From NCBI RefSeq assembly GCF_006345805.1, contig NW_021834931.1:1-58149 (forward strand): DNA of 58,149 nt, given 5' to 3'. The notes beneath the pieces are model-generated. The model was not told the origin of the DNA. It ran no database searches and saw only the letters and a program-made list of their open reading frames with translations. Within the stretch, counting starts at the first letter, position 1. Each line of letters opens with the position of its first letter. The stretch is from Octopus sinensis. Its lineage: Eukaryota. A program made the position numbers and the translations under genes. Shown here in pieces: positions 2,240 through 56,270 of this stretch.

Positions 2240-3145
2240 AATCCTCGAATTAATTACAATAAAATTACACGTTACAATGGTTTTTTGGATTATCTAAAAA
2301 AATGCTTTATAAAATTAAGATTTATAAAGATTCCACCTGTTTAGACAAAGAACTGGCAAAGAAAGAACGCTTTCTCGTCAGAAGTTTCTTGAATATCAGA
2401 AGAAGTTTTGACGGAGAAAAAGCTTTTATTTTTTAAAAGGGAAACTTTTGAGGTTCTTTGCAACTGACGAAGCTGAATTAAAGATGGAAACTATTGAGGT
2501 AAACTTATTGATTAAAATTTTAAGGCTGAGCACAATTCTAACTATTTTGGTAGAGATAAGCTTTTTATTTCATTAGCATCTAAACTATATGGAATAGAAA
2601 CACCAGAAGTTTGTAAAGTTATCGGACAGTGTACTTTTTGACAGGCAAGTTAAGTCATTTAATTTGTATTCTAAACTGTTAATAGCATCTAAACTTCTAA
2701 TTACACCTATAATTGATTACAAAGTCATTGAAAATCTTAAAAAGCGGGCGAAAAAATTACCAGAAGATGGAAATTTGATGAAGAAGACATCATTGTGGAA
2801 GAGTCAGCGAGATTAAGAAACGACATCGATGCAAATAGAAGAAAGTTCCTATTATATGACGGAATATCTGCAAAAACATGTACAGTCTTAGAAATAATGG
2901 TCATTTCTATTCTATCAAAAATGAGGAAACTCAGGAAGAACTCACAAATATACACATATCAAGATTATCTAAATTAAAAATAAATTATTAGTTTGCGTTG
3001 TATAAGTGGGATATTGGTATCTCATCGAGGAAAAAGTAAAATAGAGTTTAACAAAAAACGTATATTTTAGCGTACAATTTTAATTAAAGAAAAAATTAAA
3101 AAAGTTTTTTTGGGTTCCGTCTCCGGGGTGGTTCCGCCTCTTACC
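2240..3145 (+). mobile_element. Internally deleted Ginger2-like element
   Basis: LKMETIE|intron|AEHNSNYFG N-terminal fragment; C-terminal fragment 2720-2977 homologous to 47516-47900 and 56900-57170; GTTCCGCCTCTTAC at 3131-3144 is the inverse of the TGTAAGAGGCGGAAC end at 47217. Confidence 0.65.
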
Positions 3146-3369
3146 TTTGATAATTAATTTAAAATAATTCAATCTATAATATTTGATTTTTGATAAATCA
3201 ACACTTCCAATGTCGGTTCTCGACAATCAATCAAAAATTTCTTATAGCTTGAGAAGGGATAGGGTTTGGTGCTCCTGTTTATGTGGTATAGTTTTTATGT
3301 TACAAAAAGGACACTGCTCGATTAAAAGGAGATTTTTAAGAACTTATTTCTAATAAATTAAGACAAATT

Positions 3370-5337: not shown

Positions 5338-6528
5338 AGCAAACTAATTACGCATTAACCAATCTTTCACTAATAAACGATTCAATCGAGTTAATTAAGC
5401 TAATGTCAGTCATAAATCTATTTTTCAACCCAATCTCTTGCAATATCATTATAAAATAAGATCAGATGTTTTTTGAAGCACAGTTGTATCTTAAAGACTC
5501 GGTTCAATTTGACGAAATGAATATTTTTTATAAAAATGAAAATTTCCATACAATTAATTAACTAAACAATCATCATTTGTTTCAATTTTTCCTATTGAAA
5601 GATCAGCTAATTGAGTTTGCTCTCGGCATCAACATTGTCCGTTTGTGGAGGAAGCCACACGCACAGATCCGAGAATATAAATTAATAATTCTTTTCCCCG
5701 ACTTAACGTCCATCTTTCTGGCTCGATTCTATTTTAGGTAAAAATTCAAGAATACTTGTGGTTTCCAACCTTAAAGTGTTTTCAGAACTTTTTCAGGTTA
5801 ATTTTTTTCCTCGGAACTTTTCCAGTTAAGTTATTAAAATTTTCATTTAAAACATAATTATTATAACCAAAAAGAATTTTAATATGAAAATTGAAGTGAA
5901 TCCCCTAACTTTCAACAATGAATCTCAAGACTAACTAACCTCTGCTCCCTACATAAAAATCGAGCGCATTCTCTGAAGAACTCGATTTCTCTAAGCTATC
6001 GTCTCTTCCTGTCTACCGTCTTAATCCTGTTGTTTCCTCTTTCTGTTTTACAATAAAAATTTATTTGTTTATTAGAAACCTTTTGTGAACGTGCAGAGAG
6101 CTATAGGCCTATTAGGCTCATCAGCTCAATTTTTTTTTAATTTTTCCTCTAATATTCAAATAAATTTTCATTAATTAATTTAGTGCCTATTTTCGTGATT
6201 CATGAAATAGAAAAGTACCCAATTTATTGAGCGAAGCACTTTCATATTTAGCCCAACTATTCATTCTTCAATAAACGAAAAACCATTTAAAAAAGAGGAA
6301 TTTCTGGCACAAACACAGTCATTCATGACTATAAAAGTTTTTCAATTTTTAAAAATTTTAAGAAAAGTGAAAGTTTAGATGATTTTTCTCGGCGCTCGAT
6401 CCCTCGTGGCGCAGGGATGAATAAACAAGTATCGTGAAGAAAAGTAGAATCTCATATTGCAAAAATAAAAGAATAGTGACATAATAGTGGTCTAAGTTTA
6501 TAAAGGGAAAAAACCACAGTCAGCTAGA

Positions 6529-7480: not shown

Positions 7481-7717
7481 CCTTTCTTATAATATATTGT
7501 AAATTATAACCTTAGTAGTTATAAAAACATATATTTATTTTCAATTTTAGAAGTGAGCCAATCTTTACAAACTTTATAAAATTAGAAAATTTTTATTTGT
7601 TAAAAATCTATTGCATTGGTCTTTAATGCAATAACCGACAAGACCTTCAAATAATTATTAAATTTATTTGCAGTGTTTGTCTAGTTTTAAAATTTCTAAC
7701 AACATTGAAAGTTAATG

Positions 7718-8932
7718 GGTACTGTTGCATTTCATCCTGCACGAAAATAACCTCTAAATGAATTAATGAAAATCTTTATGAATATTAGATCGAAAATTTA
7801 AAAAATTGAACTATGCCGATTTTGTAAATTTTATTCAAATTTTTTTAAAAAATTTGAATTTTTTACCGGCTTGTGGAGATGAATGATACAGTTGTCATGC
7901 GAAAATTGCAAAACTGAAGGACTATGAACTTCCCCGTACTGAAATGGAATCAGTTGCCTTCCTTCAAGAGGTTGGAATCTTTCCCAAAGAAAAAAAATGT
8001 CAAAAGACATTTTATGACCCTTCTCCAACAGCAGGAGAATACAACATGGTGTGCTATAAAAGTGGGTGTGAACATATAGTTCTATTAGAAACGGTTAAGA
8101 GAGTACTTTATTTTTAGGTACGTGGATCGAAGGCACGAAAGTGACCTTACAGTCATGTATTCGCTTTATGTACATGTTGAGTTTTGACAGACACAGTATT
8201 TTATGGTGTCGGCGTCAACTGGAATGGAGCAGCCATACAATTTGTAATTGGTCTCACTCCCTGCGAGAGGTTTGCGCATATTATTTAGCAAATCGTCCAA
8301 ACACACTGATTGGTATTAGATTGTTAGGTGGTATTGGCAAAGTTGTCCAAGTTGACGAATGCATATTTTCTAAACGGAAAAACAATGCAGGACGGATTCT
8401 CCCTCAACAATGGGTGTTTGGGGGAATCTGTCGTGGAAGTAAAGACTGTTTCATCAAGATGGTTCCAGATCGCTCCAAAAAAACTCTAACCGCCGCAATA
8501 CAGGAAAATATCGCACCGGGATCAGTGATACACACTGACAAATGGAAGTGTAATTCTACTTTATTCTTGCTAATAGGTTATTCAACGCCAGATCTCAATG
8601 CTCTTGCTTATGTGCACCTTACAGTTAATCACAAGTTGGCCATAATTCGTTTATAAATTTGCAGACGAAATTTTGTAGGTCCGAGCACAGGTGCACATAC
8701 ACAGAATGTTGAGAGGTTCAGATAATAATTATATATGAAAATATAGAATGTGGGGGTGCGCAAAATGGCGCAATAAGAGACAAAGGGGGACCCCGCGTCA
8801 CTTCATGGGTGCATATTTTGCAGGTATTAAATACTCCTAATACATTTATAGAATTTTTAGGAGAAGGCACATAAAAATTTTCATTAATTCATTTAGAGGC
8901 TATTTTCATGCAGGATGAAATGCAACAGTACC
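7718..8932 (+). mobile_element. Merlin (IS1016/ISXO2-like) DNA transposon, family A, transposase with 6 micro-introns, frameshifted
   Basis: TIR of about 55 bp starting GGTACTGTTGCATTTCATCCTGCA; 8-bp TSD AGTTAATG at 7710-7717 and 8933-8940; VQVDEC..WVFGG..HTD.W..HTQNVERMW. Confidence 0.95.
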
Positions 8933-9177
8933 AGTTAATGTTTCTTAATTTGGTAATAATAATTTTTTCTGTTATATCGGAACTTGTCGAATGTATATAA
9001 TGCACATACCTTCCGTTTAAAAATGTTTTCCTCATTTTTAGGACTATTTCTAGCCTACTTCTTTACATTTGGTTTATTTATGATAAATTAATATTTATCA
9101 GAATTACTTAAGAATCCAATAAATAGAATAGCATTTCCACCGATAGATAACAACGTTGATTTGTTGTCCATCTTTCC

Positions 9178-9366
9178 ATGTTCCAAAGCACAACTATCTT
9201 ATACTTTCCCCTGGGACAAAAAGGAGAGTGTCCTCACCATCAGAGCTGTCGAGGCAGTCAGGGACGGCTGGTATCTGTTCAGGACGCTCAAGACCAGAAC
9301 TCCATATTACATTGGGACACCCAAGAGCGTCCCTGGATCGGCTGGAAATGGAATTTACATTCATAA
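9178..9366 (+). pseudogene. Possible C-type lectin fragment
   Basis: SCRGSQGRLVSVQDAQDQNSILHWDTQERPWIG resembles the C...G.LVS....EQ.......WIG segment; locally GC-richer than the flanks. Confidence 0.3.
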
Positions 9367-10089
9367 GAGAAAATATGGATTGGAGGAAATTGTGGTTTTT
9401 AAACATGTTAATGAGACAAATGTACTGAATCAGTGTATTCGCATGACTGTAGAACTGAAGTGCCTTGAAATTATAAAAAATGCTTTTGTATTATGAAATA
9501 ATTTAATCTACACAAATTTGATATTACATAAATCAGTGATTACATTTTATTTTTTAAAATTATTTCTAAATGTATAATTTTATGCCCCATTCGACCCTAG
9601 TACCCAGAGATAACCTCTCTATCAACATATTAAACTCCCCCATTCTCTCCAAAGCATCAATTCTGTCCTCGATAGCAATTTGTCTTGACAATTTCGGTTT
9701 CTGCAAAATCAGTAAGATATTTTTTTTACTGTCCTTGAAATCGACGTATTGTATAAAACACGGTTCTATATCTTTAATGGATAGTGTATTCCTAGTAATG
9801 ATCTAGTAATAATTCGGATTTCGAATGATCTTTAACGAAAATGTTTTTTAAACAGACTAAATTGAATAGTCATTGGTGAATAATCTTATAAAAAGCCACA
9901 TGCTATTAAAGTTTCAAAATTTTAAATGCCATAAAAGTAGGCTACCAATCTCAATGAATTAAAAATTCAAAATATTCTGTTTGTTGAATTCAATCAATGT
10001 TTTCAGTGACCCCAATATGATAAAGGAACAAAATTTTTAATTAATTTTTCATAAGGAAACAAAATATTAAAAGAAAAATCATTTGTTTG

Positions 10090-10262
10090 CGGAATGAATT
10101 GCTTGAACGCTCCAGCGGAGAATGACAACTTTTCCATACCCACGAGCATTCACGTATTCACTTTCAAAGACGTAATGATGAGACACCCTCCTACGGCTGA
10201 GGTTTCGAACGCGACCAAAGCGACAAAATACTGGTGCTAGTGACTTATAATAAGTTTTTAAG
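10090..10262 (-). mobile_element. Old CRE-like 3' remnant (tentative)
   Basis: YKSLA/HQYFVALVAFETSAVGG..LERSS, loosely matching Y..L...F.P.A.ET.G..G..L.R.S. Confidence 0.4.
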
Positions 10263-10316
10263 ATTGAGGTTTATTGGAGAATGAAAAATCCAATGAAACA
10301 AACCAAGAAAAAACAA

Positions 10317-13044
10317 TCAGCCTGAACACGAGAAACAACCATTTCCAAGCAATTTACATGTTTCCATTTGCTGAATATCATCGCTGTCAGTCGGTAGTTG
10401 TGAACTAGATGACGAAGATTTATTTTCCGCAGCTAATTTGGATCTGATTCTTGCCTTATCGACAGTGAACTGTATTGCATTGGCAGCAGGCTTTGTCCGC
10501 AAGTAGTACATTCCCGTTTTAAGTCCCTATCAAGTTGTAGAAAGTAAGCTAACAAGTTTCCAAGCGTAGAAATGCATGCTCGTAATTTTCCCATAATTTG
10601 GCTCAGCAATGTGGAGGTTAATGGATTGACTCTGATCTATGAAAGGAGACCGATCAGCAGCCATTTTTAGGATTATCTTTTGAGGGATCTCCCACACCGT
10701 TTTATACAAATTTTTGAGTTCTTCGGGAATCGATGAAATGTTCTAAATTAAAAAACACAAAAAAACCCAACCTGTACAGACCCATTAAAGTGTAATAAAA
10801 CATTTTTCATGTCGTCATTCCAAAGACCAGCATCGACGAGATCCTTGAGGAGATACTTATTGACAATTTGGAACTCCCCCGACAGAACACGACGAGTGTA
10901 AAAATTGCTAGTAAAAGGCTCAATCGACTCGTTATTTCCAAAAATTTGAGCAGTCGTTGCCGTTGGCATTGGTGCGATAAGAAGAGAATTCCTCACTCCA
11001 TACTTAGCAATATCCGCTCGGAGGGTAGCCCAATCATGACGAGAACTATCAGAAACACCCCACATGTCATGCTGCAGTATTCCTTGACTTATTGGTGACC
11101 CGGGATATGACTCATATGGCCCATATTCTTGAGCAAGGAGACAGCTTTTTTTCAGTGCAGAATAGTAGATTGTTTCAAATATATTTATATTTACTTCTCT
11201 GGCTTCTTCGCTATCAAATGGGTATCTTAACATGCAAAAACAGTCAGCTAATCCTTGTACACCAATCCCGATTGGCCGGTGTCTTAAGTTTGACAATTTC
11301 GCCTCGGGGATTGGATAGTGGTTTATGTCAATCACTCGATTTAGATTTTTGACGGTGACACCCACAATATACTCTAATAAACCATAGTCGAAAACTCCAT
11401 TGACCACAAAAGCCGAAAGAGAAATAGAAGCAAGGTTGCACACCGCAGTCTAGTAGTAGAACAACATTTTCTCAAACCTCATCTGCATCACTGTATTGGA
11501 CAATTTCTGTGCACAGATTACTCGATTTGATAGTCCCGAGATTTTTTTGATTAGATTTAATATTTATAGCATCCTTATAAAGCATATAAGGCACGCCAGT
11601 CTCAATCTGAGCCTCAACTATAGCCCGCCAGAGATGTTGAGCCTTTACTTTTCTAACATACTTTCCGGTCCTCTCATATCTAAACAAATTCAAACAAATC
11701 CTTAAATTACTCTTCATAAAGTTTATCGAAATTGTCCCCGTAGCAATCAGAAAGGCCCGGGGCTTGGTCAGGCGTCATTAGACACCACATCAAATCATCT
11801 CTGACTCTTCTCATAAATAAATCAGGGATCCATAGACCCAGGAATAGATCTCGTGCCCTCATCTCTTCTTTTCCTGTGTTCTTTCTAAGTTCGATGAATT
11901 CGTAAATATCCGCATGCCACGGTTCGAGGTAAACGGCAAACGCCCCCGGCCTCTAATCATTTTTTATTCCAAAAAACTTTATTTCCGCCTTGGTCGACGT
12001 ACCTGGCTGTGGCATTGAACACTTTAAGCATCGGAATCAGTCCATTCGACCTCCCATTTGTCTAAAAATCATCAGAGCTCATTACCCCGGCAATAAAGCT
12101 TCCCGTAGATCTTATGCAATGTACGTGGATTCCGACTCCTCCAGCCCCTTTGGAAATGAGGGCACATTCCTTCACTGTATCATATATTCCCTCAATACTG
12201 TCTGCCTTCATTGCGACCAAAAAACAACTGATTTTACACTGACATTAAGCAAAAACCTCGAAAGGGAAGAGTTTTGAGTCCCTGCGTTGAAAAGAGTAGG
12301 AGAAGCGTGAGTGAAATACTGCTGAGACATCAAATTATAGGTTTCAAGAACGGAACAAATGTCTTCTCCGTGAATTCCAATGGCCACTCGCATGTACATG
12401 TATTGAGGTCTCTCAATGACTGAAATATAACGACAAAATTACCTTTCCCATCAATTTTAATCAAATAAGACCTTTCTAATGTCTTGAATCCAAAATAAGA
12501 AATGTTGAAATCTCTCTCATCTTTAATTGCGTCGTTAATGGTCTATTTTAATCACATCAATTATAAACTTGTTTATGGGTTTGGACTATATTATATAGAT
12601 TTTCAGACACAAGAGGGTATGGTCTCGATGTATCCTTGTGGATGTAATGGTAGAGCTCATCAACCGCATCTGATACATTTTAAGATAATATTTTGCCTGA
12701 AAATTGGCTTTTGGTTTCTTTTTGTAGATTAGATATTGCAATTCTCGAAGCTAATGTTGCGTAATCGGGGTGTTTTGTGGTCATAGTGGCAGCCGTCTCT
12801 GCAGCCAGATTGTCAAGTTCTTTGGTTTTTACACCGGAGTAAAGGCCATTGACCACTTTGAGAGTCACCTGAGCCTATTGGAAAATAAATTCGAGCAAAT
12901 AACCGGGTCTATATGGTCCTCGTTTAGACCATAGCAAAGCTTTGTGATTCGGCTTGTGATTTTATCAAGGAAAACTTTTTCTGTTCTTCCATCTAATTTA
13001 GAAAGGTTTTTTAAAACAGCAAAACCTCGTTTCTCAACAAACAT
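10317..13044 (-). CDS. RRM1: Ribonucleoside-diphosphate reductase large subunit (class Ia)
   Basis: MFVEKR|[16 protein letters not shown] cone; [13 protein letters not shown]; GGNK|[13 protein letters not shown]; SNLCTEI; AVCNLAS; [13 protein letters not shown]; C-terminal CFSCSG; introns about 23-33 nt. Confidence 0.98.
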
Positions 13045-13169
13045 TTTTCGACAGTTTATGATAATATAGAATTTTATTAAATTTAAAGACTTGTTCATAG
13101 ATATTCATTTTTTTAATTTTAAATAATAAAAATATTTAATGCATATTTTATGTCTTTTTGACTGCTGGC

Positions 13170-13370
13170 AGCAAAAAACAGATTTTCGAAAATCTATTTG
13201 TATCAGATGATGCGTCTTGGCGATATTTTTGTGATTTTTTGAAGACGAGAAAGCCCAACAAGGAAATGAATTCATGGGCTTTCATTCCGAGAATGCCTAT
13301 GTTGTCAAAAAATGGGAGTCAGCAAGAAGAACTCCCTGATGGCCATGTTTTAATGATTTTCAAATTTAAT
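13170..13370 (-). mobile_element. Very degenerate CRE-like 3' remnant (tentative)
   Basis: LPFFDNIGILGMKAHEFISLLG..NRFSKIC, loosely matching P.AVETSG.LG.KA..F...G..QRLSI. Confidence 0.3.
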
Positions 13371-13841
13371 CAAATTAGATCAAATTGAGAGATGTTAGTC
13401 ATATTTTGTTAGTCATCAGATTTAATAACAAAGTAATTTTGACATCTAGCATTAAATAAAAGTAATCTACATTAAAAAATTAATTTGTTGGTTGGCTTTC
13501 CTGACTCGTTTGACATTCGTTTTTGATAAAGAATTTGAATATAAGAAAGGAGAACGATTTTGTCATTGAGAAAGAACAATGAGAAAATAATTTTTTTAAA
13601 TAAAATAAAAAGTAGTTCTAATTGTTTTTCTTTCATAATATTTGCTTTGTACTTTCTTATTAAAAATTTATGTCTCTCTTAAAATAGTGTAAAAATTCCC
13701 TTTAAATTGTAATTAATTTAACTTCATAGAAAAATTAGAGAACAACAAAGTGAAAGAGCGTGCAGCAACTTTTATAACTTTTACAAGTTTTTTTTCAAAT
13801 ATATCTTTATTGGATAAGTTGGAGAGAACAGGGAATAAGTT

Positions 13842-13914
13842 TTTTTTTTTTATTAAAAATGTTAATTTTTTTTAAACTCTCTTGGATCGTGACGTGACTA
13901 GTCGACGGATTTAA
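13842..13914 (-). mobile_element. 73-bp CRE-derived micro-retroinsertion
   Basis: 12-bp TSD AGGGAATAAGTT at 13830-13841 and 13915-13926; poly(T) on the plus strand; core matches GACTAGTCACGATCCAAGAGAGTTT of the CRE copy at 43481. Confidence 0.8.
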
Positions 13915-14037
13915 AGGGAATAAGTTATTCACGAATTAATTAAGAGCCTGGAGGTCAGCTCACATTCGCCACTTTTACAAGTTATTCCGACGTAAATTTA
14001 TCATTTATCAACATTTAGGGTGAAGAAGAAATAAATT

Positions 14038-14155
14038 ATGTACAACACTGTTTGTTCCCAGGCGGTCACCCAGCCAAGTAATAGAACAGCCTGTAATCGC
14101 TTAACTGCCGTGTTCGGATGGGAACGGGTATTTACGACTAAGTATGATCGTACAT
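14038..14155 (-). rRNA. 5S: 5S rRNA (divergent)
   Basis: 118 nt; helix I ATGTACGA/TTGTACAT; CATAC, CCCATCCGAAC, box A-like AGTTAAGC and box C-like GGCTGGGTGACC, then GCCTGGGAAC. Confidence 0.92.
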
Positions 14156-14184
14156 TTTGAATGTTTTTTACCTTATTTGGGAAT

Positions 14185-14300
14185 TGTTAAATTCACGCCT
14201 CATGAGAGTTCTTTTTGCTTTTTCAACGCCTCTCCATTGCCGTAATCCGTGGCAACCTTTTCGCAATCCGTGAGCCTGGGAGAGCGTCCGATACTTTCTT
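14185..14300 (+). mobile_element. CRE-like 3' fragment
   Basis: FQRLSIAVIRGNLFAIREPGRASD. Confidence 0.8.
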
Positions 14301-15019
14301 TTTTTCAAACTGTCTTTTAGCCAACATTTAATTTCAATATCTATTTTGTCTGTATACCTTGTTTTTTAGATTTTTGTTTTCTATTTTCTAAATCTTCTGA
14401 TGAAATTAGATTTTCAATAAATTTTTTATTTCCGTTTATTCAATATTTAAAAAATCCGCTAATTTAAGAATATCGAAAATGCCCGTTTTTCTTCTCAATT
14501 TCAAGAATTTCTTTATTAGAGTTATTTAAAAACTTAGAACAATTCCCGATAGTATCTTCGAATACGTCTTCTCAAGCCATTTTTTTAAAAATGGCTGTGT
14601 CCTATAAATTCAGTATCTTGTAAGAATTATAAACAGAAATATTTTGTGTTTCCAATAATTCTGTCAAATACGATAACTTGGGTCTAATAAAAGTAATCTG
14701 AAAGATTCTATAATGCCAATATAAATTAATTGAAGTAACCCCGTAGTATTTGTTAAAAGAAAAAATATTTCTATTTATACCCAATTCGGCGGAATACAAT
14801 GCCCAGAGCAGCTGTCAATCAATAGTAAATATTGTTTTTTTTTTTTGAGCTGAATATCAAAATTAGTCAACGAATCCATAAATATAGACCAGGTCATCTA
14901 AACTCTTTGTGAAATATAGGAGGAGATAGAGCATCTATAGGCATAATTTCTAGATTTTTTGGCTTTGAAATCATCATTGGTTTCAATTTTTTTTCGCGTA
15001 ATTTTATTAATAAAAAGAC

Positions 15020-15140
15020 TAGAGAAAACTGGGCCTTGGCAGATAGCCAGAGTATTACCTTTGACTATGGCTATGGATATTGGTTTCAAATTATGCGTTC
15101 TGTTACTAAAGATTGCAACAGTTTCTGATTTCGCCTCATT
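15020..15140 (-). mobile_element. CRE-like 3' remnant
   Basis: PISIAIVKGNTLAI matches the LSIAVIRGNVFAI motif of the other copies. Confidence 0.55.
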
Positions 15141-15181
15141 TCAAAATATAAACAAATTTAATGTATTTATCAGAAATAAAA

Positions 15182-16266
<1,085 letters not shown>

Positions 16267-16550
16267 TTACAAAATAACATATAAATAAATTAATCGTGTA
16301 TAAACAAGCAATCACAAACAAGGAACAACAACGAAGTGTACTTATTAGAAATAAAATTAATTCAAAAAAAGTATTATAACTACAATTAAAAAAATCGATT
16401 TTATAATAATCCTTAATTAAAATAAACATTAATCTTTAAACTAATTCTCAAACAAAGACTAAATCTCTCGTTGTCACGTCTGTGTTTATTGGTTTATTCA
16501 TTAAGATGTTTTAATTCTTTTTAATTTGACTATTAGGTTGAAAATATTTC

Positions 16551-16613
16551 GACTAGCCACGACTAGCCACGATCCAAGAGAGTATTCTTGGCTGCTGGAA
16601 CGTCTGTCGATTG
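16551..16613 (+). mobile_element. CRE-like fragment fused to the 5' end of a LINE
   Basis: TSHDPREYSWLLERLSI, nearly identical to the 43481 copy; starts with a 10-bp tandem duplication GACTAGCCAC. Confidence 0.85.
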
Positions 16614-19600
16614 AAACAAAACCCGCCGCCCCGAAGGCGAGAGCAGTGAAGAAAACTGCAGTAGCAAAATCTGGAGTTCAGCTGCCAAGCCCTGAAGCCC
16701 GGCTGGAGGACGATGGGACGCCTCCAGAGCCGGCTGAAACCGGTGGCAAACGGAAAGCAGGCAGACCCCCTTTACCGAAAAAGGTGGCGCTCCCACGGGA
16801 GGTCAGCCACCCATGTCGGAAGGATTCCTTGCTCTGACAATTCTAAATGCCCGCTCGCTTGCGAGACGGGCATCGGAGCTGAGGCTCCTGCTGGCCACAG
16901 CGAAGTCTCACATATTGATTATCAATGAGACTAAGCTGAAGGAAGCTACGAGGGTGGAATTCGAAGGCTATAAGTCTATTAATATACCATGGAAAATAAA
17001 CTCAGTGGCGGGGACAGGAACCTCAGTCTACTACAGGGCGAACCTTAAGGTAAGAAACATCAGAATTGTGGAGGAGTCACTCTGTGAACTTATTGTGCTC
17101 GAGCTGCACACGACTGCTGGCTGGCTAACCGTCGGGGGAATGTACTCAAAGTCGCTAAGGCGCTATTCAAACGTTATTGGGACGTTCTTTGAGGGAAATT
17201 GCCTGTCAATCCTAGCAGGAGATCTTAATGCCAAAAATGTGAGTTATGGATGTGAAACTACGAATATGGATGGAACTGTCCTTGAGGACTTGGCCAGTAG
17301 CTTGGGTTTTTCGGTCTTTACATCGGAAGAACTGAATCATTATGCAGACAGAGGCAGGGCTGATCGCTTGGGTCTCTTTCTATGCTCGGCATCAATTAGT
17401 CCTATGTTACATACCGAGGTTGTAAGCGGACATTGGCTCTGACACGTGCCGCAAACGATGTTGATAAAGATGACTATGAATGTTACGGAGGACTTGTTCA
17501 TTGGTTACAACCTCGTGAACATGAACTGGAGTTTATTCGAATAATATGCGGGATTCTCTTCGAAATGTCGTGTCCCAGCCTCTGAGAAGCAGAGATGATA
17601 TTGACAATCTCGATGATCACCTTAGATCGTCAATCATAAAATTCCTGGATGTTTATCCATTAAAAAATGTATGGAAACCCAAAGGAACGCAAAAGCGGAT
17701 GAATTCGAAACTTGTCACTCTGATCAGAACGAAAGGTACCCTGGAAAATCGCAGGAGAAGATGTCGGGTTGAGTCAATCAAATGCCGCCTGAAATTGGAG
17801 ATCGACAAGATAAAATCTACTATTGCAAAAATGGCCAAGACTGAGGTCGAAAGTAAATGGAGGTCTGAATGCAGAAAACTGGATAAGCGAAACCCTAATT
17901 TCTGGAAAGCATATCAACGCCTTACCAGAAATGATGCAAAGGATTTGAAATTTCACTAAAAGAACCAGACGGGAAATATATCTCCTCTGATCGTATCCCG
18001 GAAGTACTCAGGAACCAACTTAGTCAGTTCAAGAGGTCGAATCTACCGTTCCACGAGGGACTTATGACCGAATTGTGAAGAAGCTTGCTATTCGCAATTA
18101 TCGGAGGGACCATTATGTGGGGCGATAACACAGGAAGAGGTTGAAAGGGCAATTGCTGGGTTGAAGAACAAGGCGCCTGGCTTCGACTACATCCCTCCGA
18201 AGTTGTTAAAGAAGGCCCCTGAAATCTTGATACGAGCATTGACTATGTTGTTTCACGCCAGCTGGACGTTCGGACACTCATTCCATCGCGTGGAAGCATA
18301 CGATTGTTCGAATGATTCCAAAATCTGGTAAATCGACACTGCTGGCACAGAACTACCGGCCAATTAGCCTCATTTGTGCTTTCTCTAAGACAATGGAAAA
18401 AGATTGTCTTTAACAGACTCTCTGGTCATATAGAATCACAAAATTTGCTTTTACCTGAACAATGGGGATTTCGTGGAGGAAGATCCACAGGGGACTGCCT
18501 CAGGGAGTTAGAGCACCAATTATCCCGTGCTGACAGAAATGAAGCATGGCTAACTGTGGTGTGTCTGGATCTGGCCAAAGCCTTCGATAGCGTGTGGCAC
18601 CTGGGCCTACTCTCCAGAATCCATGACATCGGAGCCGGGATAAAGACCTATCGATGGCTGGAGAGCTTCTTGTCAGGAAGACAATCATTTGTCCGCTGTG
18701 GAAACCGCCTATCGGGGTGTGTGGAACTTAGAAGGGGAGTCCCGCAGGGATCTATCTTGAGTCCACTTCTGTTCAACCTCTTCTTGGCGGACATTCCTCT
18801 GCCGTCGACACGTACTGGCAAGCTCGTTATCGGTACTTTTGTCGAAGTGGTCGCAGTTTTTTTTGAAGATAATTAAAATTAATTAATTTTTTTAGTGAAA
18901 AATAGATTATTTAATTTATAACCCTCTATCAATAATTTAAATGGTTATTAAAATTATTTAAAAATTTATTTAACCAATTTAGTCATTTTTAGTACGCGGC
19001 ATCCAAATTCCAGGACTGTAGAAGGAATTTATGTCTTTTACAATCTGTGCAAAAGATTCCTTATAGTTCTGTATTTGTTTTCGCCACATAAATTCTGAAA
19101 AAATAACTAACTAAAAAAACCGGTACTTTTGTCGAAGTGGTCGCAGTTTTTTTAGGCCTTTTAAAAATCTAATAATTTTTGAGGTGGAATATATTATATT
19201 TTATCACTTCGACAAAAGTACCTCGTTATCTATGCTGACGATATCCTGGTCATGGATACCTCGAAAAGGATATCGCAGTCTTGGAGACGACTGAAATCAT
19301 ACATTGCAACGCTAAAGATGTGGACTATAGAGAAGGGTTTGACCCTAGCACCGGAGAAGAGCACCATTTCATGGTTGCGGAGAGGGAGTCGCTATGCGGA
19401 GTCTTGTGCATATGCGATGAGTAGCTATGTGATGGATCTCTCGAAAAGAAAAAATCTTTCTTACCTGGGAGCAACCATTAACTGTCGTGGCTCGTACGTA
19501 GAGCATATAGCAAATCAGAGAAAGAGGAGTGTGAGGATCCTCAAAAGCTTAACCAGGTTCCATCTGGATCCGGAAACGTACATCTACGTATACAAAACGT

Positions 19601-19910
19601 GTGTGCAGCCAGTCCTCACATATGGCTACGAGGGCTGGTACGGTACGGAGGAGAGTGACTACCTGATCGAACAGTTGGAAAAGACAAGACGTTTCGCTAT
19701 GAAATTGGCTTACGGAGTACAACTTGACGGAAGGCTAAAAGACTCACAAGAATCCTCTGTGCCCACGATCCGGATGGTCTTGGAGAATTGTCGTCAAACA
19801 TGACTAGTATTGGGGATACGCATGGAAAGAGACACTTCGGTGCCTTGTTTTTATCTCCCCGCCGATGTTTTTCTTCCTTGTTTTTCTTTTTCTTTTCGCT
19901 CAATAAACAC
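16614..19910 (+). mobile_element. APE-RT LINE (I/Jockey-like), 5'-truncated and disrupted
   Basis: LNARSL..INETKL..AGDLNA endonuclease; YRPISL, QWGFR, DLAKAFD, GVPQGSILSP, YADD reverse transcriptase; frameshifts; interrupted by a Merlin derivative. Confidence 0.93.
18832..19222. mobile_element. Merlin family B non-autonomous composite with three TIRs
   Basis: 8-bp TSD TCGTTATC at 18824-18831 and 19223-19230; 18832-19121 is the reverse complement of 22028-22317; 19122-19222 is the left end plus a short right TIR. Confidence 0.93.
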
Positions 19911-20069
19911 TATTCTATTTTGTGTCGGCTTAGGTGTTTGGTTCGATTCATTTATTATATGAATTTTTTCAATGTCGAGGTGTTTACAGTGAACAAAAAT
20001 AAAAACTGAACATGTTTTTTTTATAAATTTACAATGGGGCAATAGTATGGTAGGTTTAAGTCTTTTAAT

Positions 20070-20300
20070 GTAGTCTCCAGATATACGACAATCAGCATAG
20101 GAGATAACAGATCCTTTTGATGTGTTCCGGATGCTGTTTCAAACCCTGATCGATAGATAGGTTACTGATAAGAGTTTCCTGATCATTCGGGTCAAAGATT
20201 CGTCAAGGAATTCTGTAAAGACATCCGTCAATTTCTGACGACTGATAAAGTCAAAAGCTTTTGACATATCGATTTCAAAAATGTTTGTCAAATTTTTGAA
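20070..20300 (-). mobile_element. Degenerate RTE-like reverse transcriptase fragment
   Basis: IDMSKAFDFISRQKL..LLSPMLIVVYLE; related to the element at 26170-30200. Confidence 0.65.
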
Positions 20301-20915
20301 TCTTTCAATAGTGGAACATCGCCAACCAATAACTTTATTATTTTACAAAATAAAATTAATACTAGAAAGAAAGTTTATTAATATTAGCAACCATAAAAAA
20401 CAATGAGCTTTCAAAAATGTTACTAGCGACAACGAATTAAGTATGAAAAATATATTTACTTTAAATTCCTAATCCAAATTTTAAAAACCTCTTATTACTT
20501 GTTAACATTTAATTGGGTCACTCTTCTGCAAACCAATTGTTAAAAAGACATCCTAAAAAGCTAGCTCGACTCCTTGGAGTCATAAGTTCTTTTTGAGATA
20601 AAAGAATCTACAAAAGAGAATAATTCACATGCCTTATAACAGCGCTTCCTGATTCGGGGTACTACAAATAATTTTGAAAATTTTCCGACACTGGATGAAA
20701 TCGCACTTGAATCCAGATCGAAATTCGATAAAAATATTAAAAAAGAAATCAACTATCATTTTGAATGCTTAAAACTTTTTTTATTGATGTTTTTCAAAAT
20801 ATCAAATTTGCAACAAAAGCACTGAAAGTTTTGGTTTCATTTTCATTAATTTTCTTTCAATGGAGATGAATTCTGTTTTGTCGATGTTAACGTTCAACAA
20901 CTATTTGCTAAGAAT

Positions 20916-22317
20916 TACTTTTGTCGAAGTGGTCGCAGTTTTTTTAGGCCTTTTAAAAAATCTAATAATTTTTGAGGTGGAATATATTATATTTTATTTA
21001 AGTCGCTCTATCAATAATTTAAAATATTATTAAATTTTTTACTAATTTATTTTCTAATTTTTTTAATATTATGGCGAGCATGTACCTAATATTGATATAA
21101 ACTGGCACTATAGGTCACATGGAAAATTCTGTTGTGGACTTATGCAACATCAAATTCCGACAGCTCCCAATAAGTAAGGAGGATGCAGTGCATTTTCTGC
21201 AAAATGTGGATATCCTTTCAAAATCACGTATATGTCCGAAGGGACATCAGATGGAATTAGTCTTGGGACCGAAGCTCAATTGGAAATGCTCAAGAGTTGG
21301 TTGTAGAGTCCAATGTTCTATTAAAAAGGTATAATTTCTCTCAAATAATTCTAGATACCTGGTTAGAGAATTGTAGATTGCCATTTGAGGATGTCATCGC
21401 CTACATATACTTATGGAGTTACGATAGGCATACCTTCAAATGGCTTCATCACGAATACAATTGGGGTGAACATACATATGTCGATTGGGCTATGTTTTTA
21501 CGTGAAGTCTGTGTGGACGCACTTGTTAAAAGATCTGACGGCAAAATTGGTATTATTAATGTTTATTTCAGGTGGTCCTGGTATGATTGTGGAGGTAGAC
21601 GAGAGTATGTTTTCCAAACGGAAAAACAACTCTGGAAGAGTTTTACCAAAACAGTGGGTCTTCGGTGGTATTTGTCGAGCCACCAAACAGTGTTTTCTGC
21701 AACCAGTCGCGGATAGGAGCAGAGAAACACTGCTCAGTCTAGTAATTCGATATGTCGAGGTGGGAAGCATTATTTATAGTGACTGCTGGAAAGGTTAGCA
21801 TTATTTGATTAACATTTAGGGTATTCAACTGATCAATTGGTTGAAAACGGCTACACACACGAAACCGTTAACCATAAGTAAGGAAATATAATATATTCAG
21901 AAAATTCTTTGTGGATCCAACGACGGGAGTGCACACCCAGACAGTAGAACGAATGTGGGGAAGTGCAAAATGCAAGAATAAAGCTCAAAGAGGAGCTGTA
22001 AGACATCATCTGGGATCTTATTTCGCAGGTTTTTTTAGTTAGTTATTTTTTCAGAATTTATGTGGCGAAAACAAATACAGAACTATAAGGAATCTTTTGC
22101 ACAGATTGTAAAAGACATAAATTCCTTCTACAGTCCTGGAATTTGGATGCCGCGTACTAAAAATGACTAAATTGGTTAAATAAATTTTTAAATAATTTTA
22201 ATAACCATTTAAATTATTGATAGAGGGTTATAAATTAAATAATCTATTTTTCACTAAAAAAATTAATTAATTTTAATTATCTTCTAAAAAAACTGCGACC
22301 ACTTCGACAAAAGTACC
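20916..22317 (+). mobile_element. Merlin DNA transposon, family B, nearly intact transposase with 5 micro-introns
   Basis: TIR (GG)TACTTTTGTCGAAGTGGTCGCAG, left end lacks the terminal GG; DDE in VEVDES, YSDCWKGY and TVERMW; ATG near 21119; only a 1-nt loss before intron 1 breaks the spliced frame. Confidence 0.93.
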
Positions 22318-22763: not shown

Positions 22764-24221
22764 CAGGGGTGGCCAACCTTTTTCACCGGCGAGCTACTTT
22801 TCATTTTGCGATTTTTTGGAGATCGACTTATATATTTTAATATCAAAAATTTTATTTTACAATTAAAAATTAATGCGATTTTTGGCATTGTAATTCACTT
22901 GCGATTATTTCAAATTCTGGCTCGTATAAGCTTATTGCTATTCTCATGCAATCCCCAAGATGGTCATCCGTTAAACGTGTCCTGTATTGAGATTTTATCA
23001 TTTTCATACTTGAAATGATGTTTCGGATAAATATGTGCTTCTAAAGCATGAAAGAATTCGTTGATACGAATCAATCAAAATTGGATATTTTTCCTGAGAC
23101 ATAAATTTCCACATGTTGACATTTGAATGTAATTTTAAAGTGATGTCATTTTTTAGATTTATAATTTCTATTTGACTTTTTCTTCCATCAACGTCAAAAA
23201 TCTTGCTAAATTCTTCTGAAATATTTTCGATGTCTACATCCATGAACGGAGAAACAAAGAAACTGCATAATATAGTAATTTTCTTGAAATCGCTAAATCT
23301 GTTATTAAACTCGTTCATTATTTTTTCTAGTACCATAGCAAATTCATTGACATAATGATTTTTATTCACAAGTTGTTTTGTGAATTCATCTTCAATGTTA
23401 GGAAAATGGGTAAAATTTTCTTTTCTGATTTGAGATATCCATAATTCCAACTTCATTATGAAAGCATTTATTAACTGATCATATCGATAATATATCTATT
23501 CTTTCCCTGTAATTCTAAATTGAGAAAAACACGAACATGCGTAAAGATCCTTTTTTAACTGCGAAGAAGATTTTCAGAAATGCTTTCAGCCCTTCTGACA
23601 ATTGACTGTTTTGAGAGCTGAAGCTCTTTGATGCAATTTGAAATTTCCTGTTTAGTTTTCATACCATCAAATAGTGAATCGGCAGCTTCCAAAAAACAAG
23701 ATTTAAAATTTCCCCATCAGTGAAAGGTTTTTTGTGTTTTACGAGGAGACGAGTCACTCGCAATGATGCAATTGTTGCAGATCTGGACGAATTAATAAAC
23801 TTTTTCAAAATTGTATGTTGTGAAAAAAAGATTTTTTTAATTGTTCAACTTTCTCTTCCCGTAATAAGGAATTTAAAGGAAAGTGTTTGTTGAACTCGGG
23901 ATGTAAAGAATTAAAATGCCGACAAAGATTTCCCCTTTTTGGTAATGAAATGATTTTATTGCATAGCATACATGTGCATTTTTCCATGTGCATCGTAAAA
24001 ATATAGTCTTTTTCTTTCCCATTTGGCATTAATTTATATGATTTGGACTTTTTGTTACACCTCATAACAAGACACGTGAAAATACTTACTTTAATATTGA
24101 TAATTTTTTTTTAATATATTTAAATACAAAAAAATAATTAGCAATTTATATATCGAGCGATCGACCACGAAACATGCCGCGATCGACCAGTCGATCGCGA
24201 TCGAACCGTTGGCCACCCCTG
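22764..24221 (-). mobile_element. hAT transposon, GTF2IRD2/EPM2AIP1-like, internally deleted
   Basis: TIR CAGGGGTGGCCAAC; 8-bp TSD TCTTAAAG; CMLCNK..KRGNLCRHFNSLH and FRSTYLSET fragments. Confidence 0.92.
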
Positions 24222-25173: not shown

Positions 25174-25850
25174 TGTCACCGGTTGAGAGTGATTGCAGGC
25201 TGAGAACGATCGCGCAAAGTCGATTTTGCCGTTAACGCCGTTGATACGCAATATCGATTTCGCCGTAAACGCCGTGCCGTTGCTACGCTAAACGAAACCT
25301 CAAAAATATAGATTATCAACAAATTAAATTAATATAATCACAAAAATCATCACTTTAGATTTTTTAGTTTAAAAAAGAAAGAAAATTTTAATTTTTTAGA
25401 ATGGCTGACCTCATATGAAAATCGAAATTTTCCGAACACGTTACATAATTTTTTGTTATGAAGTTCGTTTTATTGACCCTACAGAAAAAGTCGGAAATTA
25501 TAGCATTTCTTAAGGATGGTGAAATGCCAGATGAAGTGATTCAGAATCAGAATGAGTCAAATTTTAGGAGAACGGCATCATTATTTAGATTGTCGGACTC
25601 TAAAAATGACATTCTTTACTTCAAAACTTCGGGAATTTTACTACGTACCTTCGCTCTCGAGGAAGTAGAAGAAAAGAAACTTTTTATTAAAAATCCTCAT
25701 TTAAAAAATGGACATCCAGGTCGAGACAAGCTGCTTTTTCTCCTTAAAGATACTGTCTATGGGTCTTGTCGGAATGAGGTTATGTCAGTTCTCAAATCAT
25801 GCTGCCAATGTCAGGCGAGAAAGCTTATGACAAAGTATTTATTATAATTA
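25174..25850 (+). mobile_element. Ginger2-like element, left end and integrase N-terminus, truncated
   Basis: Starts TGTCACCGG like the ends at 55517 and 56271; ORF 25458-25847 ends HLKNGHPGRDKL..VLKSCCQCQ (H2C2 zinc-binding domain). Confidence 0.75.
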
Positions 25851-28451: not shown

Positions 28452-29717
28452 GTTGTTGTTGTTGTTGTTGCATAACCCCGGTCTCACATTAGGGTATGAG
28501 ACCGGCAGCTAGCAGAAACAACAGCGCCTTCGCGGGTTGCTCCCAAAGGACCTCGGGGGAGTGGACAGCAAATTTCCTGCGGACAGGGAGGAGAACAGGG
28601 CAGCGGAAAAGGTGATCAGTTGAGTGATCTTCGGCACAGCAGAGGTTGCATACCGGGGAGATCACGACGTTCAATGAGTGAGCGTAGGAGTTTAGTGAGT
28701 GGTGGTGGCCCGAGCGGAAACGAGCAAGGTTGATCTGAGCGGAACGCTCCAGAAGCATTTCGGAGGGGTGAACTTCCGGAGGAAGTTTGTTGAGGACAGA
28801 GTTAGGCTTCAGCCTTAGAATGGACGACGTTGAAATGAAGTCGTGGATTTTTTTCATTGGCTGTGAACATTGGTTTAGGCCATTGATTTTGGCAAGTACC
28901 CGGGAGTATAGTTTGGCAGGCGTGTTCTTCAATGCACGGCCGTTGTCATTTAGCGTGTTTAGGGCAGTGCAAGGGTGGTAGAGTTTTCGCGAAGCGAATA
29001 GGAATTGTGCTCCTCTCATGTTTAGATGTTCCTCTATCGGGAGGAGGTTGGTTTCACAGTGCAGATGGTCGATGGGTGTTGATTTCAGGCACCCGGATAT
29101 GATGCGCATGGCTTTGTTTTGAATTGATTGGAGAGCCACAGAGGAGCTCATAGAAAGACAGGGAGCCCAACTCGGACTCGCGTAGCTTAGGACAGGGCGA
29201 ATGTATTGTTTATACACACGTTTGAGAAGTGGTTTCTGCGCACCAGTGATGCGACCACTTATTGCTTTCAGGATATTTGTACGCCTGTTAGCCTTGTCAG
29301 AGATCTTCGAGACATGTTTATTGAAGGACATCGTTGGGTCGAAGGTTAGTCCGAGAACAGTGGGGTGTTTTGATAGTGGGAGAACAGAGCCAAAGAGAGA
29401 TAGGTTGGGATGTATGTTTGATTGTCTTCTGTCGGAAGATAATAGGGTGACCGAGGACTTGGAGGACGAGGCCTCGAGCCTGTTTTCTCTGAGCCAATTC
29501 TCAACGGAGTGGAGTTGTTGCTGAAGGTTGAAGGAGGCAGCTTTGTAGTCTTCGTGTTTTGAGGCAATAATAATGTCGTCAGCGTAAGATAGTGTCAAGT
29601 TGTTAGGGTCGTTTGCCGGGAAGTCGTGCAAGTAAAGATTGAACAGGGATGGAGACAGCACGGAACCCTGCGGTACCCCGTTTGGAAGATAGCGATAGCG
29701 TTTTGGAAGATAACTTC
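28452..29717 (-). mobile_element. 5'-truncated I/Jockey-group LINE with (CAA)n tail
   Basis: Open 390-aa frame GVPQGS..YADD..FRSGHH..CNLC..HLFRCP; (CAA)n tail; TSD TATTTTAAAAG(TT) at 28439 and 29718. Confidence 0.93.
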
Positions 29718-30248
29718 TATTTTAAAAGTTCTCCATTAATACCATCAATACGCGGATTCCTACAATTGTTCAATTTCCGCAGGGCAGTTTGCATTTCAGT
29801 GATATTAATTAAAACAGTTAAACTTCTAGGATCTCCAACAAACTGAAATATGTGTTCATCTTCATTTTTGAAGAGGGACTCGAAGTAAGTAGCAATTTTG
29901 TCGGCCATCTCTTTTTTATCAAACATCCTCCTTCCATAGTCATCGTGTAGAATTAATTTTTTGGGCCTTTTCGTTCTGTTTAGCAATCGAATAGCTCTGA
30001 ACATTTTTGGGCCATAACTGAGCTTTTCAACTTCTTTGGCATACTGTTCAAGTGTTCTTAGATGGAGTAAGCGTACTCTTCTTTTAATATTCCGTAGAAT
30101 GGAATTCCTCTTGTATTTTAGTTCTATTTTAACGTCCATATGCTTTGAATTCTTTATACGAAGTCGAAGATTTTTCTGTATTCTGGAGTATGCGTATGTA
30201 AAAATATAAATATTTCAAAAAAGCTCATATGAATTAAATTAATTTTTT

Positions 30249-34400: not shown

Positions 34401-34693
34401 TGGCAGCTGGGCGAACTTTGTGGAGCATGGGTGTTACAGCTAAGCCAAGGACGTGGTTCCAGAGAGCAGTTAATGTGGATTCGAGTTTTGGCGATGCTTG
34501 GGCGACGTTGTATAAGTTTGAATTGAAGTATGGGACAGTGGAAGAGCAACTGAGAGTGTTTAGAGAGTGTGTGCGTAATGAACCAAGGCATGGAGAGTTT
34601 TGGAAGAGAATTTCAAAGAAACCTGAGAATTGGATGCTAAAAACTGAGGATATTCTACCTCTTGTTGCTACCTCTATACCTGAAATAATTTAA
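31437..34693 (+). CDS. PRPF6: Pre-mRNA-processing factor 6 (U5 102-kDa HAT/TPR protein)
   Basis: [12 protein letters not shown]|[14 protein letters not shown]; [12 protein letters not shown]; [10 protein letters not shown]; HAT repeats; [12 protein letters not shown]; about 17 short introns. Confidence 0.98.
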
Positions 34694-35379
34694 TTTTTGA
34701 TTAGTTGTAACTATTAGTTTTTTCACATTCTTAATAAATTGATAAGTAATTTGACATTTACTGCCTATTCGTTTTCCGTGATACGACTTAATCGTTGTAG
34801 TTTTCAATTTTTAGCTTTTCTATTTACTGGGATATTGTATGTTTTAGTGTTTATTTTATTGGTTTTGATTAGTGATTCAATCTTTGAGAAAGCTCGATGA
34901 TCACATCTAAGCTTTTGATGAAATATATTTTTAATAAGCACAACGCAACATAACGTTAGTAAAGTTATCTCGCTTGTGCCACCCTGTCCTGGATGCGTTT
35001 TGTTAATTACTTCCAAGTCCCTCTGTTCCTCGATAGTTCCCTCAGGTGCTCAAGATTGTCTGCTGATTTCAACTTTTTTCCAATCAAGGTGATGAAATAT
35101 ATGTTAGAATCTATTTAGATACAATTAAAAAATTGAGTTTCAAAATGTGTTTATAGAGTTCTTTTGCTTTACTCAAGTATATTTTAGTTCATTGTAACGG
35201 AAATGCATATGATTTTTTAATATATTCTTTTTTTGCCAATTTCCTCAAATTTTTCTTTACATGTTTCATAATCACCTAAGGATCCAAAAAATTAATAATA
35301 ACAAGGGATAAGATAAATTTTAGATGTTTTTAATGCCTTTTTTCATTGACTTAAACGATTTTACAATAAGCCAAGAATA

Positions 35380-50869: not shown

Positions 50870-51500
50870 GAGAAAATCTGAAAGGTTGCCTCATCATACG
50901 TTTTGAAGACATTCACGTTGTTCATTTTGACCAAAATGCAAAAAATTATTTTTTGGCGGGAAGATTTTAAGGACCTCATCATGTGAGTCGACGACATGCT
51001 TGTTGTTCATTTTAACCAAAATAGAAAAAAATGTTTTTTAATTTGTGTTGGTGGGAAGGTTTTAAGGACCTCATTGTGTGAGTCGGGAAATTGTAGTTGT
51101 TTATTTTAACCAAAATGCAAAAAATTATTTTTGGCGGGAAGATTTTAAGGACCTCATCATGTGAGTCGACGACATGCTTGTTGTTCATTTTAACCAAAAT
51201 AGAAAAAAATGTTTTTAATTTTGTTGGTGGGAAGGTTTTAAGGACCTCATTGTGTGAGTCGGGACATTGTAGTTGTTTATTTTAACCAAAATCCAGGAAA
51301 TATATTTTTTATTTTTTTGCGAGAAGGTTTTAAGGACCTCATAATTGAGGATATTCTTGATATGTTAGTTTTTTAGGTGGAAGATTTTTGGCGAACCTCA
51401 TCATTTTGGGGGAAAAGGATTTTGACAATTTATCTGTATTTTGCCAATTTGAAGTATGCGCACACACAGACACATACAACATACCATTTTATTAATAAGT
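50870..51500. repeat. Tandem 83-95 bp monomers in a ~177-bp dimer, possibly inside a Helentron/DINE-like non-autonomous element
   Basis: GGACCTCA core at 50971, 51066, 51149, 51242, 51334 and a degenerate copy near 51391; ends with a CA-rich tract then TTTTATTAATAAG. Confidence 0.7.
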
Positions 51501-56268: not shown

Positions 56269-56270
56269 AT

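Follow-up and report, generated by a model that had tools for sequence, protein, structure and literature searches.

The 58,149-nt stretch of DNA analysed here (the window) carries two DNA transposons of the Merlin/IS1595 DDE type, one of family A and one of family B, along with short derivatives of both families (Table 1). In Pfam searches, both predicted transposases match PF12762 (DDE_Tnp_IS1595; cut-off of 27 bits), with 60.7 bits (E 2e-16) for A and 70.2 bits (E 2.5e-19) for B, and they do so only once a set of very short putative introns is taken out. The catalytic D, D and E residues are kept in A, B and five intron-less relatives, within the motifs VDE(S/C), (S/T)D and VER. The window also contains remnants of hAT transposons.

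Table 1. Transposon features of the window, with the annotated relatives used for comparison
Feature	Position	Strand	Description
Merlin family A element	7718–8932	+	1215 bp; TIRs, TSD, PF12762 after splicing in silico
A intron 1	8094–8117	+	24 nt, phase 1, column 64; N-G/TW split; homologue is B intron 1
A intron 2	8313–8327	+	15 nt, phase 1, column 129; I-G/G split; homologue is B intron 2
A intron 3	8550–8576	+	27 nt, phase 1, column 203; directly 3' of second catalytic D motif; homologue is B intron 3
A intron 4	8635–8664	+	30 nt, phase 2, column 222; K codon of VNH-K; homologue is B intron 4
A intron 5	8716–8746	+	31 nt, phase 2, column 239; R codon of VE-R/MWG, adjoins catalytic E
A intron 6	8824–8851	+	28 nt, phase 1, column 265; FA-E/F split; homologue is B intron 5
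Merlin family B element	20916–22317	+	1402 bp, nearly complete; TIR, PF12762, tblastn exon blocks
B intron 1	21329–21354	+	26 nt, phase 1, column 64
B intron 2	21550–21571	+	22 nt, phase 1, column 129
B intron 3	21794–21819	+	26 nt, phase 1, column 203
B intron 4	21878–21900	+	23 nt, phase 2, column 222
B intron 5	22029–22054	+	26 nt, phase 1, column 265
Rearranged non-autonomous B derivative	18832–19222		391 bp, inside LINE reverse-transcriptase gene; perfect 8-bp TSD TCGTTATC
Family A miniature element (MITE)	48291–48388		98 bp; 8-bp TSD TATCTGAA
Solo A-like right end	6157–6219	+	79% identity to A right end
Nilaparvata lugens relative	copy at L001		single-exon, 280 aa/843 nt
Strongyloides ratti relative	L002 1204–2486		single-exon, 275 aa/828 nt
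Stegodyphus relative			single-exon, 244 aa/735 nt
Macrosiphum relative			single-exon, 287 aa/864 nt
Trichonephila relative			single-exon, 292 aa/879 nt

Ends, coding regions and state of the two copies

A repeat search of the window identified inverted ends (TIRs) of about 55–69 nt in A, which are 93% complementary, and a perfect 32-nt TIR in B. The A element is flanked by a perfect 8-bp target duplication (TSD), AGTTAATG, at positions 7710–7717 and 8933–8940, and 8-bp TSDs are also present in two further cases, the family A miniature element and the B derivative, in line with the 8–9 bp expected of the Merlin/IS1595 superfamily. No TSD was found at the ends of the B copy itself, and its left terminus lacks the GG. 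The GGTACT start occurs at both ends of A, at the right end of B, in both miniature elements and in the S. ratti relative. An earlier, sequence-only reading had described A and B as diverged Merlin families whose TIRs have only GGTACT in common. Direct inspection of the window reproduced its element coordinates and intron sequences, and the description holds, with xTTG as a small addition to the shared letters: the spliced proteins are 51% identical over 203 aligned amino acids, with zero gaps.

The coding region of B begins with an ATG at 21119 and reaches a stop near 22167 (about 309 codons), which, together with the PF12762 match, agrees with the earlier view that splicing yields a nearly complete DDE transposase. 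The 1-nt frame problem suspected before B intron 1 is real and lies at the exon 1/intron 1 boundary. A second frameshift, absent from the sequence-only reading, separates SGCEH from SSIRNG in A exon 1. The A element also has an internal deletion at its 3' side, and its last exon ends with EFLGEGT and a stop directly at the inverted end. An intact transposase frame is thus found after splicing in neither copy. Both copies in the window are dead and neither can be an active source; since both are frameshifted, neither proves the existence of an intact intron-bearing gene.

The rearranged B derivative is made up of an inverted copy of B 22028–22317 (at 18832–19121, 100% identical) and a 101-bp miniature element (at 19122–19222). 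Miniature derivatives with perfect TSDs, one of them 100% identical to the B end, suggest that mobilisation in trans took place recently. We also considered whether A and B could be domesticated genes, and rejected this given the TIRs at both loci, the TSD at one of them, the miniature derivatives of both families and the broken state of both copies.

Putative micro-introns and their shared positions

The 11 putative introns are 15–31 nt long and all have GT...YAG boundaries. Their GC content is 0.21–0.25, compared with 0.41–0.43 in the exons. When they are removed, the alignment is gapless across every junction, both with the partner element and with the five relatives. In the resulting multiple alignment of seven rows (A, B and the five intron-less relatives), every one of the five B introns coincides with an A intron in column and phase, at columns 64, 129, 203, 222 and 265 and in phases 1, 1, 1, 2 and 1. 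The claim that the five B introns occupy the same codons and phases as A introns is therefore upheld, far beyond chance: with random placement among about 615 codon-phase sites, a coincidence of five out of five would have a probability of ~1e-11. A tblastn search of B with an intron-less protein (P0003) as query recovered colinear exon blocks at query positions 6–59, 63–126, 126–200, 200–219 and 219–263. The remaining intron, A intron 5, is specific to A, and B and all five aligned relatives are continuous at column 239.

None of the B introns has a length that is a multiple of three, and in A, too, retention would disrupt the frame or bring in a stop for three or four introns. A intron 2 is in frame and stop-free, and is read through within an ORF at 8141–8656; it is shorter than every host intron verified in the window and may have lost its ability to be spliced. 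A blind ORF-maximising splice finder, applied to A and B, placed just two introns exactly, B introns 3 and 4. It took other paths elsewhere because in-frame introns and an alternative frame that is open by chance compete, so ORF length alone cannot serve as a test here and the case for introns is one of homology. A different candidate identity for these segments, ciliate IES, was rejected: they are bounded by GT..AG and not by TA, host ORFs obey the standard stop codons, and the genes are plainly those of an animal.

Relatives of the elements and introns of the host

All five of the annotated relatives checked are single-exon, consistent with the usual description of Merlins as single ORFs, and many further database matches are 290-aa ORFs on contigs of about 1 kb. 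To our knowledge, the superfamily is usually regarded as intron-less. The element of S. ratti measures 1283 bp and has a TIR (GGTACTTTT...) whose terminus is the same as that of B, and the length of B approximates the length of this element plus the 123 nt of B introns. The transposase tree joins A and B as sisters (SH-aLRT 96) and embeds the pair among animal Merlins that lack introns. Their branches are long (0.91 and 0.68), and long-branch attraction could contribute in part to the grouping. A protein database search with spliced B returned no match above 60% identity, and no spliced homologue above that level; it yielded no further copies, spliced transcripts or other sequences of the same host. 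A literature search for intron-bearing Merlins, or for transposons in micro-intron animals, gave nothing specific; Feschotte 2004 fell outside its scope, and an earlier description is possible.

A and B resemble Merlin relatives such as those of S. ratti and N. lugens in having PF12762, a transposase of about 290–310 aa, a compact element of 1.2–1.4 kb, a TIR that starts with GGTACT(TTT), 8-bp TSDs, and numerous derivatives that are miniature or have internal deletions. Unlike these relatives, which have one uninterrupted ORF, they contain six (A) and five (B) putative spliceosomal micro-introns at the density of host genes. Intron-containing DNA transposons with splicing-dependent or splicing-regulated activity include the P element, Ac, Tc1/Tc3 and Minos. 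Likewise, in A and B host splicing would be needed to produce transposase mRNA and retention would truncate the protein. Those transposons have one to a few introns of ordinary size, whereas A and B have five to six micro-introns, of a size not known to be spliced in most animals.

Host genes in the window, RNR1 among them, have introns of 24–31 nt with GT..AG boundaries; six of those in RNR1, with a GC content of 0.27, are confirmed by a gap-free alignment with Tachypleus RNR1. The transposon introns, at 22–31 nt with the exception of A intron 2, fall within about the same range and have the same composition, so they are indeed of host size, as the sequence-only reading had proposed. In a database search and tree, RNR1 puts the host with the bilaterians, close to spiralians, echinoderms and an acoel but apart from the cnidarian, on a long branch and with weak placement. 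The host is probably a dicyemid, with a myxobolid as the alternative; a dicyemid is preferred partly because no myxozoan protein was a closer match, which is a soft argument. With 5–6 introns in roughly 0.93 kb of CDS, the transposons are as rich in introns as the average gene of Dicyema japonicum, which has 6.2 introns in a CDS of 1155 nt (PMC6736024). The host micro-introns of dicyemids and myxobolid myxozoans share their length range (about 20–31 nt), GT..AG boundaries and AT-richness with the RNR1 introns verified in the window (PMC13644364; PMC6736024). However, host micro-introns are regarded as old introns that have shortened, which is established for dicyemids and has been described as convergent shortening (PMC13644364), whereas those of A and B are insertions relative to intron-less relatives, and so gains.

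Origin of the introns

Animals rarely gain introns, and such gains are difficult to demonstrate, since it is usually uncertain which state of a gene is ancestral. Merlins are descended from intron-less bacterial IS1595/IS1016-like elements. With relatives that are compact, single-ORF and derived from bacterial IS elements, the ancestral state is clear and the introns of A and B can be read as gains. Most likely they were gained once, ahead of the A/B split, as the sequence-only reading had suggested: this is the most parsimonious placement because A and B are sisters nested among intron-less Merlins and all five relatives are single-exon. In our view A and B are probably families of one Merlin lineage that gained at least five host-type introns before the split, in a micro-intron animal.

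Under this proposal, the ancestor would have been a compact single-ORF element like those of the arthropod and nematode relatives. The lineage would have become resident in an animal with spliceosomal introns of only about 20–31 nt, and would have gained five or more spliceosomal introns of the host type by the time A and B separated. A sixth intron would then have been gained by A, a loss from B being the less parsimonious alternative. The host spliceosome would remove all of the micro-introns from the pre-mRNA to give a transposase of roughly 300 aa, with a DDE core and, N-terminal to it, a zinc-finger-like CxxxH...C...C region. This enzyme would act on inverted ends of roughly 30–55 bp that start with GGTACT and would generate 8-bp target duplications. 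Short derivatives with intact ends and perfect duplications show that mobilisation in trans occurred in the families, recently so in B. We infer that the introns are actually spliced, and likewise the timing and mechanism of their gain and the dependence on the host. Reliance on the host spliceosome, a restricted host range and splicing control of transposition, all raised in the sequence-only reading, may reasonably be inferred.

That reading also had the introns shrink to host size. Gain at ordinary animal length, with later shortening alongside the host introns, would be in keeping with the view that the introns of micro-intron animals are themselves shortened old ones (dicyemids; PMC13644364), and the deep divergence of A and B, at 51% amino acid identity, means that residence may have been long. 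We nevertheless consider it unlikely and find no support for shrinkage: longer ancestral introns have left no trace, no related element among the database matches and the five annotated relatives has longer introns at these sites, and the A-specific intron, most parsimoniously a gain after the split, is already micro-sized at 31 nt. The transposon introns may instead have been born short.

Explanations that dispense with a single gain before the split fare worse. Introns ancestral to the Merlin clade and lost in all other animal lineages are very improbable; we found no direct support for them, exon structure having been checked in the five annotated relatives only, and they conflict with the position of A and B within a large clade whose members have a single ORF and with the intron-less bacterial origin of Merlins, so that many independent complete losses would be needed. 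A case for separate, parallel gains in the two families at favoured 'proto-splice' sites could draw on the fact that a Gly codon is split as G/GN at three of the six sites, and that G/GT already exists in intron-less relatives at two of these (for example ATTG/GTGG and GAAAG/GTTAC in N. lugens). However, two of the shared sites, CAxAA/A and GCAG/AA, are not G/GT, the tree has A and B as sisters, and the coincidence at five of five sites would be very unlikely even with a site preference, which makes parallel gain extremely improbable. It is scarcely credible that the interruptions are not introns at all but random insertions in dead pseudogenes: both copies are decaying, as the frameshifts, the deletion and the 'intron' of 15 nt show, yet all of the interruptions have GT..YAG boundaries and the size and composition of host introns, five pairs lie at identical positions despite the divergence of the proteins, and their removal restores perfect colinearity with the relatives.

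Beyond the single gain before the split, it is possible, though we lean slightly against it, that the micro-intron lineage is still creating host-sized introns, and that resident DNA transposons are driven to the intron density of host genes (5–6 per kb), become locked to a spliceosome able to process introns of 20–30 nt and are blocked from horizontal escape to ordinary animals. If intron gain is indeed still active, A and B, with outgroups that all lack introns, would document six or more intron gains with unusual clarity. The gains in A and B, which reach the density of introns in host genes and the size of host micro-introns, bear on how and when introns arise in genomes known for shrinking old ones, on whether expression in micro-intron genomes needs introns, and on whether a transposon can come to depend on an unusual spliceosome of its host, a dependence that would restrict horizontal transfer. 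Annotation pipelines for repeats and genes would miss or fragment transposases of this kind unless introns shorter than 30 nt are allowed.

Elements A and B and their micro-introns

Both Merlin transposons recognized in the sequence-only reading, elements A and B, are present (see table). Element A has a perfect 8-bp duplication, AGTTAATG, on both sides. In element B the terminal GG is missing at the left end, and no target duplication was found. With the proposed introns removed, B exons 2–6 and A exons 2–7 match PF12762 (DDE_Tnp_IS1595) in Pfam well over the cut-off; exon 1 and the downstream exons were searched as separate pieces, so no stop is read through. The domain, the catalytic motifs, terminal inverted repeats beginning with GG and 8-bp target site duplications (TSDs) identify the group as Merlin/IS1595. 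Both copies are non-autonomous. A carries a frameshift in exon 1 and is missing ~190 nt at its 3′ end, and a 1-nt frame break is present at exon 1/intron 1 of B, where a 1-nt loss had been proposed.

The claimed introns hold up. All 11 segments begin with GT and end with YAG, with lengths of 24, 15, 27, 30, 31 and 28 nt for A introns 1 to 6 and 26, 22, 26, 23 and 26 nt for B introns 1 to 5, and GC content is 0.21–0.25 in introns versus 0.41–0.43 in exons. Once they are removed, the A and B proteins align over 203 residues with 51% identity and zero gaps. In tblastn with P0003, an intron-less relative, B is matched in colinear blocks (q6–59, 63–126, 126–200, 200–219 and 219–263) whose breaks coincide with the proposed introns, and a seven-row alignment of A, B and five intron-less relatives has no gaps at the junctions. 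In this alignment the five B introns occupy columns 64, 129, 203, 222 and 265 in phases 1, 1, 1, 2 and 1. These are exactly the columns and phases of A introns 1, 2, 3, 4 and 6, in line with the sharing of codons and phases noted earlier for all five B introns; with ~615 possible codon-phase sites, the chance of five such coincidences out of five is of the order of 1e-11. Only A has an intron at column 239 (A intron 5; phase 2), next to the catalytic E.

An ORF-only splice finder working blind missed some of the introns, so it is homology rather than open reading frames that carries the case for the whole set. A introns 2 (8313–8327) and 3 (8550–8576) are in frame and stop-free, and an ORF at 8141–8656 reads straight through both. 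A intron 2 is shorter than every verified host intron in the window and may be a decayed intron.

Features located in the window
Feature	Position	Strand	Details
Element A	7718–8932		inverted ends ~55–69 nt, starting GGTACTGTTGCA
Element B	20916–22317		perfect 32-nt inverted repeat, (GG)TACTTTTGTCGAAGTGG...
Family A miniature element	48291–48388		98 bp; 8-bp TSD TATCTGAA
Solo A-like right end	6157–6219		79% identity to A right end
Rearranged B derivative	18832–19222		391 bp; within LINE RT gene; perfect TSD TCGTTATC
RNR large subunit (RNR1) gene	~13000–10320	−	many 20–31 nt GT..AG introns; junctions verified by homology
Acetyl-CoA synthetase gene	~40900–38200	−	many putative 20–31 nt GT..AG introns
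PRP6 gene	~31500–34700	+	many putative 20–31 nt GT..AG introns
Ser/Thr kinase gene	~16000–15200	−	many putative 20–31 nt GT..AG introns
U2 snRNA gene	1060–1249	−	full-length; 159 bits
5S rRNA gene	14037–14155	−	98 bits

The host of the window

The window DNA is from an animal. It contains RNR1, PRP6, acetyl-CoA synthetase and protein kinase genes, LINE elements, hAT remnants, and U2 snRNA and 5S rRNA genes. The host RNR1 shares 70% identity with bilaterian RNR1s; no match closer than these was found. Six of its introns (24, 25, 31, 28, 29 and 27 nt; GT..AG; GC 0.27) were confirmed in an alignment with horseshoe-crab RNR1 that is locally free of gaps. Within animals, such short introns have been reported only for dicyemids and myxobolid myxozoans (PMC13644364). 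The GC content (~0.27–0.46 per 2-kb window, mostly 0.30–0.40) and the richness in repeats and LINEs agree with Dicyema japonicum (36.7% GC, 49% repeats, expanded LINEs and 6.2 introns per 1155-nt CDS; PMC6736024). In a weak RNR1 tree the host groups with spiralians, echinoderms and an acoel, not with the cnidarian. The host is likely a dicyemid.

The U2 gene, of interest since the host splices 20–30 nt introns, overlaps the end of the second copy of a 144-nt exact repeat (1–144 and 929–1072).

Relatives and probable intron gain

The closest database relatives of B have only ~53% identity to it, and are either ~290-aa single ORFs on ~1-kb contigs or annotated nematode, spider and hemipteran proteins. 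Each of the five annotated relative genes retrieved has a single exon (N. lugens, 280 aa/843 nt; S. ratti, 275 aa/828 nt; Stegodyphus, 244 aa/735 nt; Macrosiphum, 287 aa/864 nt; Trichonephila, 292 aa/879 nt). The S. ratti element has ends GGTACTTTTCAG... with a terminus identical to that of B, and its 1283 bp plus the 123 nt of introns in B roughly make up the 1402 bp of B. A maximum-likelihood tree of 64 sequences recovers A and B, both on long branches, as sisters (SH-aLRT 96) nested in this intron-less animal clade. Introns in the transposase gene are familiar from other superfamilies (P, Ac, Tc1/Tc3 and Minos). In literature other than the founding Merlin paper, we found no paper on intron-bearing Merlins, or on transposons that had gained micro-introns, in dicyemids or myxozoans. 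The transposase gene of DDE transposons is commonly described as intron-less (bioRxiv 10.1101/2021.09.26.461848).

In the most parsimonious history, a Merlin without introns would have entered the host lineage, gained five introns there and split into families A and B, with a sixth intron gained in A. The resulting density, 5–6 introns per ~0.93 kb of CDS, is that of host genes. A Gly codon is split (G|GN) at three intron sites, and because some intron-less relatives already carry G|GT there, the gains lie at proto-splice-like sites. The earlier interpretation, that introns were gained before the A/B split and then shrank to host size, is partly supported: gain before the split is the most parsimonious reading, given the position of the two sisters, and later shrinkage is a possible one. 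The A-specific intron is likewise micro-sized, and we therefore lean towards introns that were born short. Because all B introns have lengths that are not multiples of three and several A introns contain stops or shift the frame, the transposase is predicted to depend on the host spliceosome. A and B offer a clean, datable record of several gains at host micro-intron size, albeit from defective copies and with splicing predicted.

Derivatives and other repeats

Both families also have short derivatives whose ends are intact and whose 8-bp duplications are perfect. The first 290 nt of the B derivative are an inverted copy, 100% identical, of the B 3′ end (22028–22317) 2.9 kb away, and a 101-bp miniature element makes up the rest; the copied block begins a single base ahead of B intron 5. 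The derivative stems either from a recent local transposition or from abortive gap repair, or else is an assembly artefact. If it is no artefact, it indicates recent trans-mobilisation and implies that a working B-type transposase, predicted to be necessarily spliced, exists or recently existed in the genome.

Other mobile remnants at 16813–19803 (+), 28489–30139 (−), 23004–23456 (−), 41899–42641 (+) and 25458–25847 (+) comprise two LINE-type elements (APE endonuclease domain, RT ORFs), hAT dimerisation-domain fragments and an LTR-type integrase zinc-binding domain. A tandem array of ~90-bp units lies at 50889–51345. The block at 55500–58140 consists of ~1.5-kb direct repeats, which contain GC-rich 84-nt units (ACACACCGCGGCCGAAGGCCGC...) spaced ~92 nt apart, and inverted repeats. 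Two members of a further repeat family occur 44 kb apart in inverted orientation (2281–3167 and 47195–47895), with 79–86% identity over their best-matching pieces (42–228 nt).
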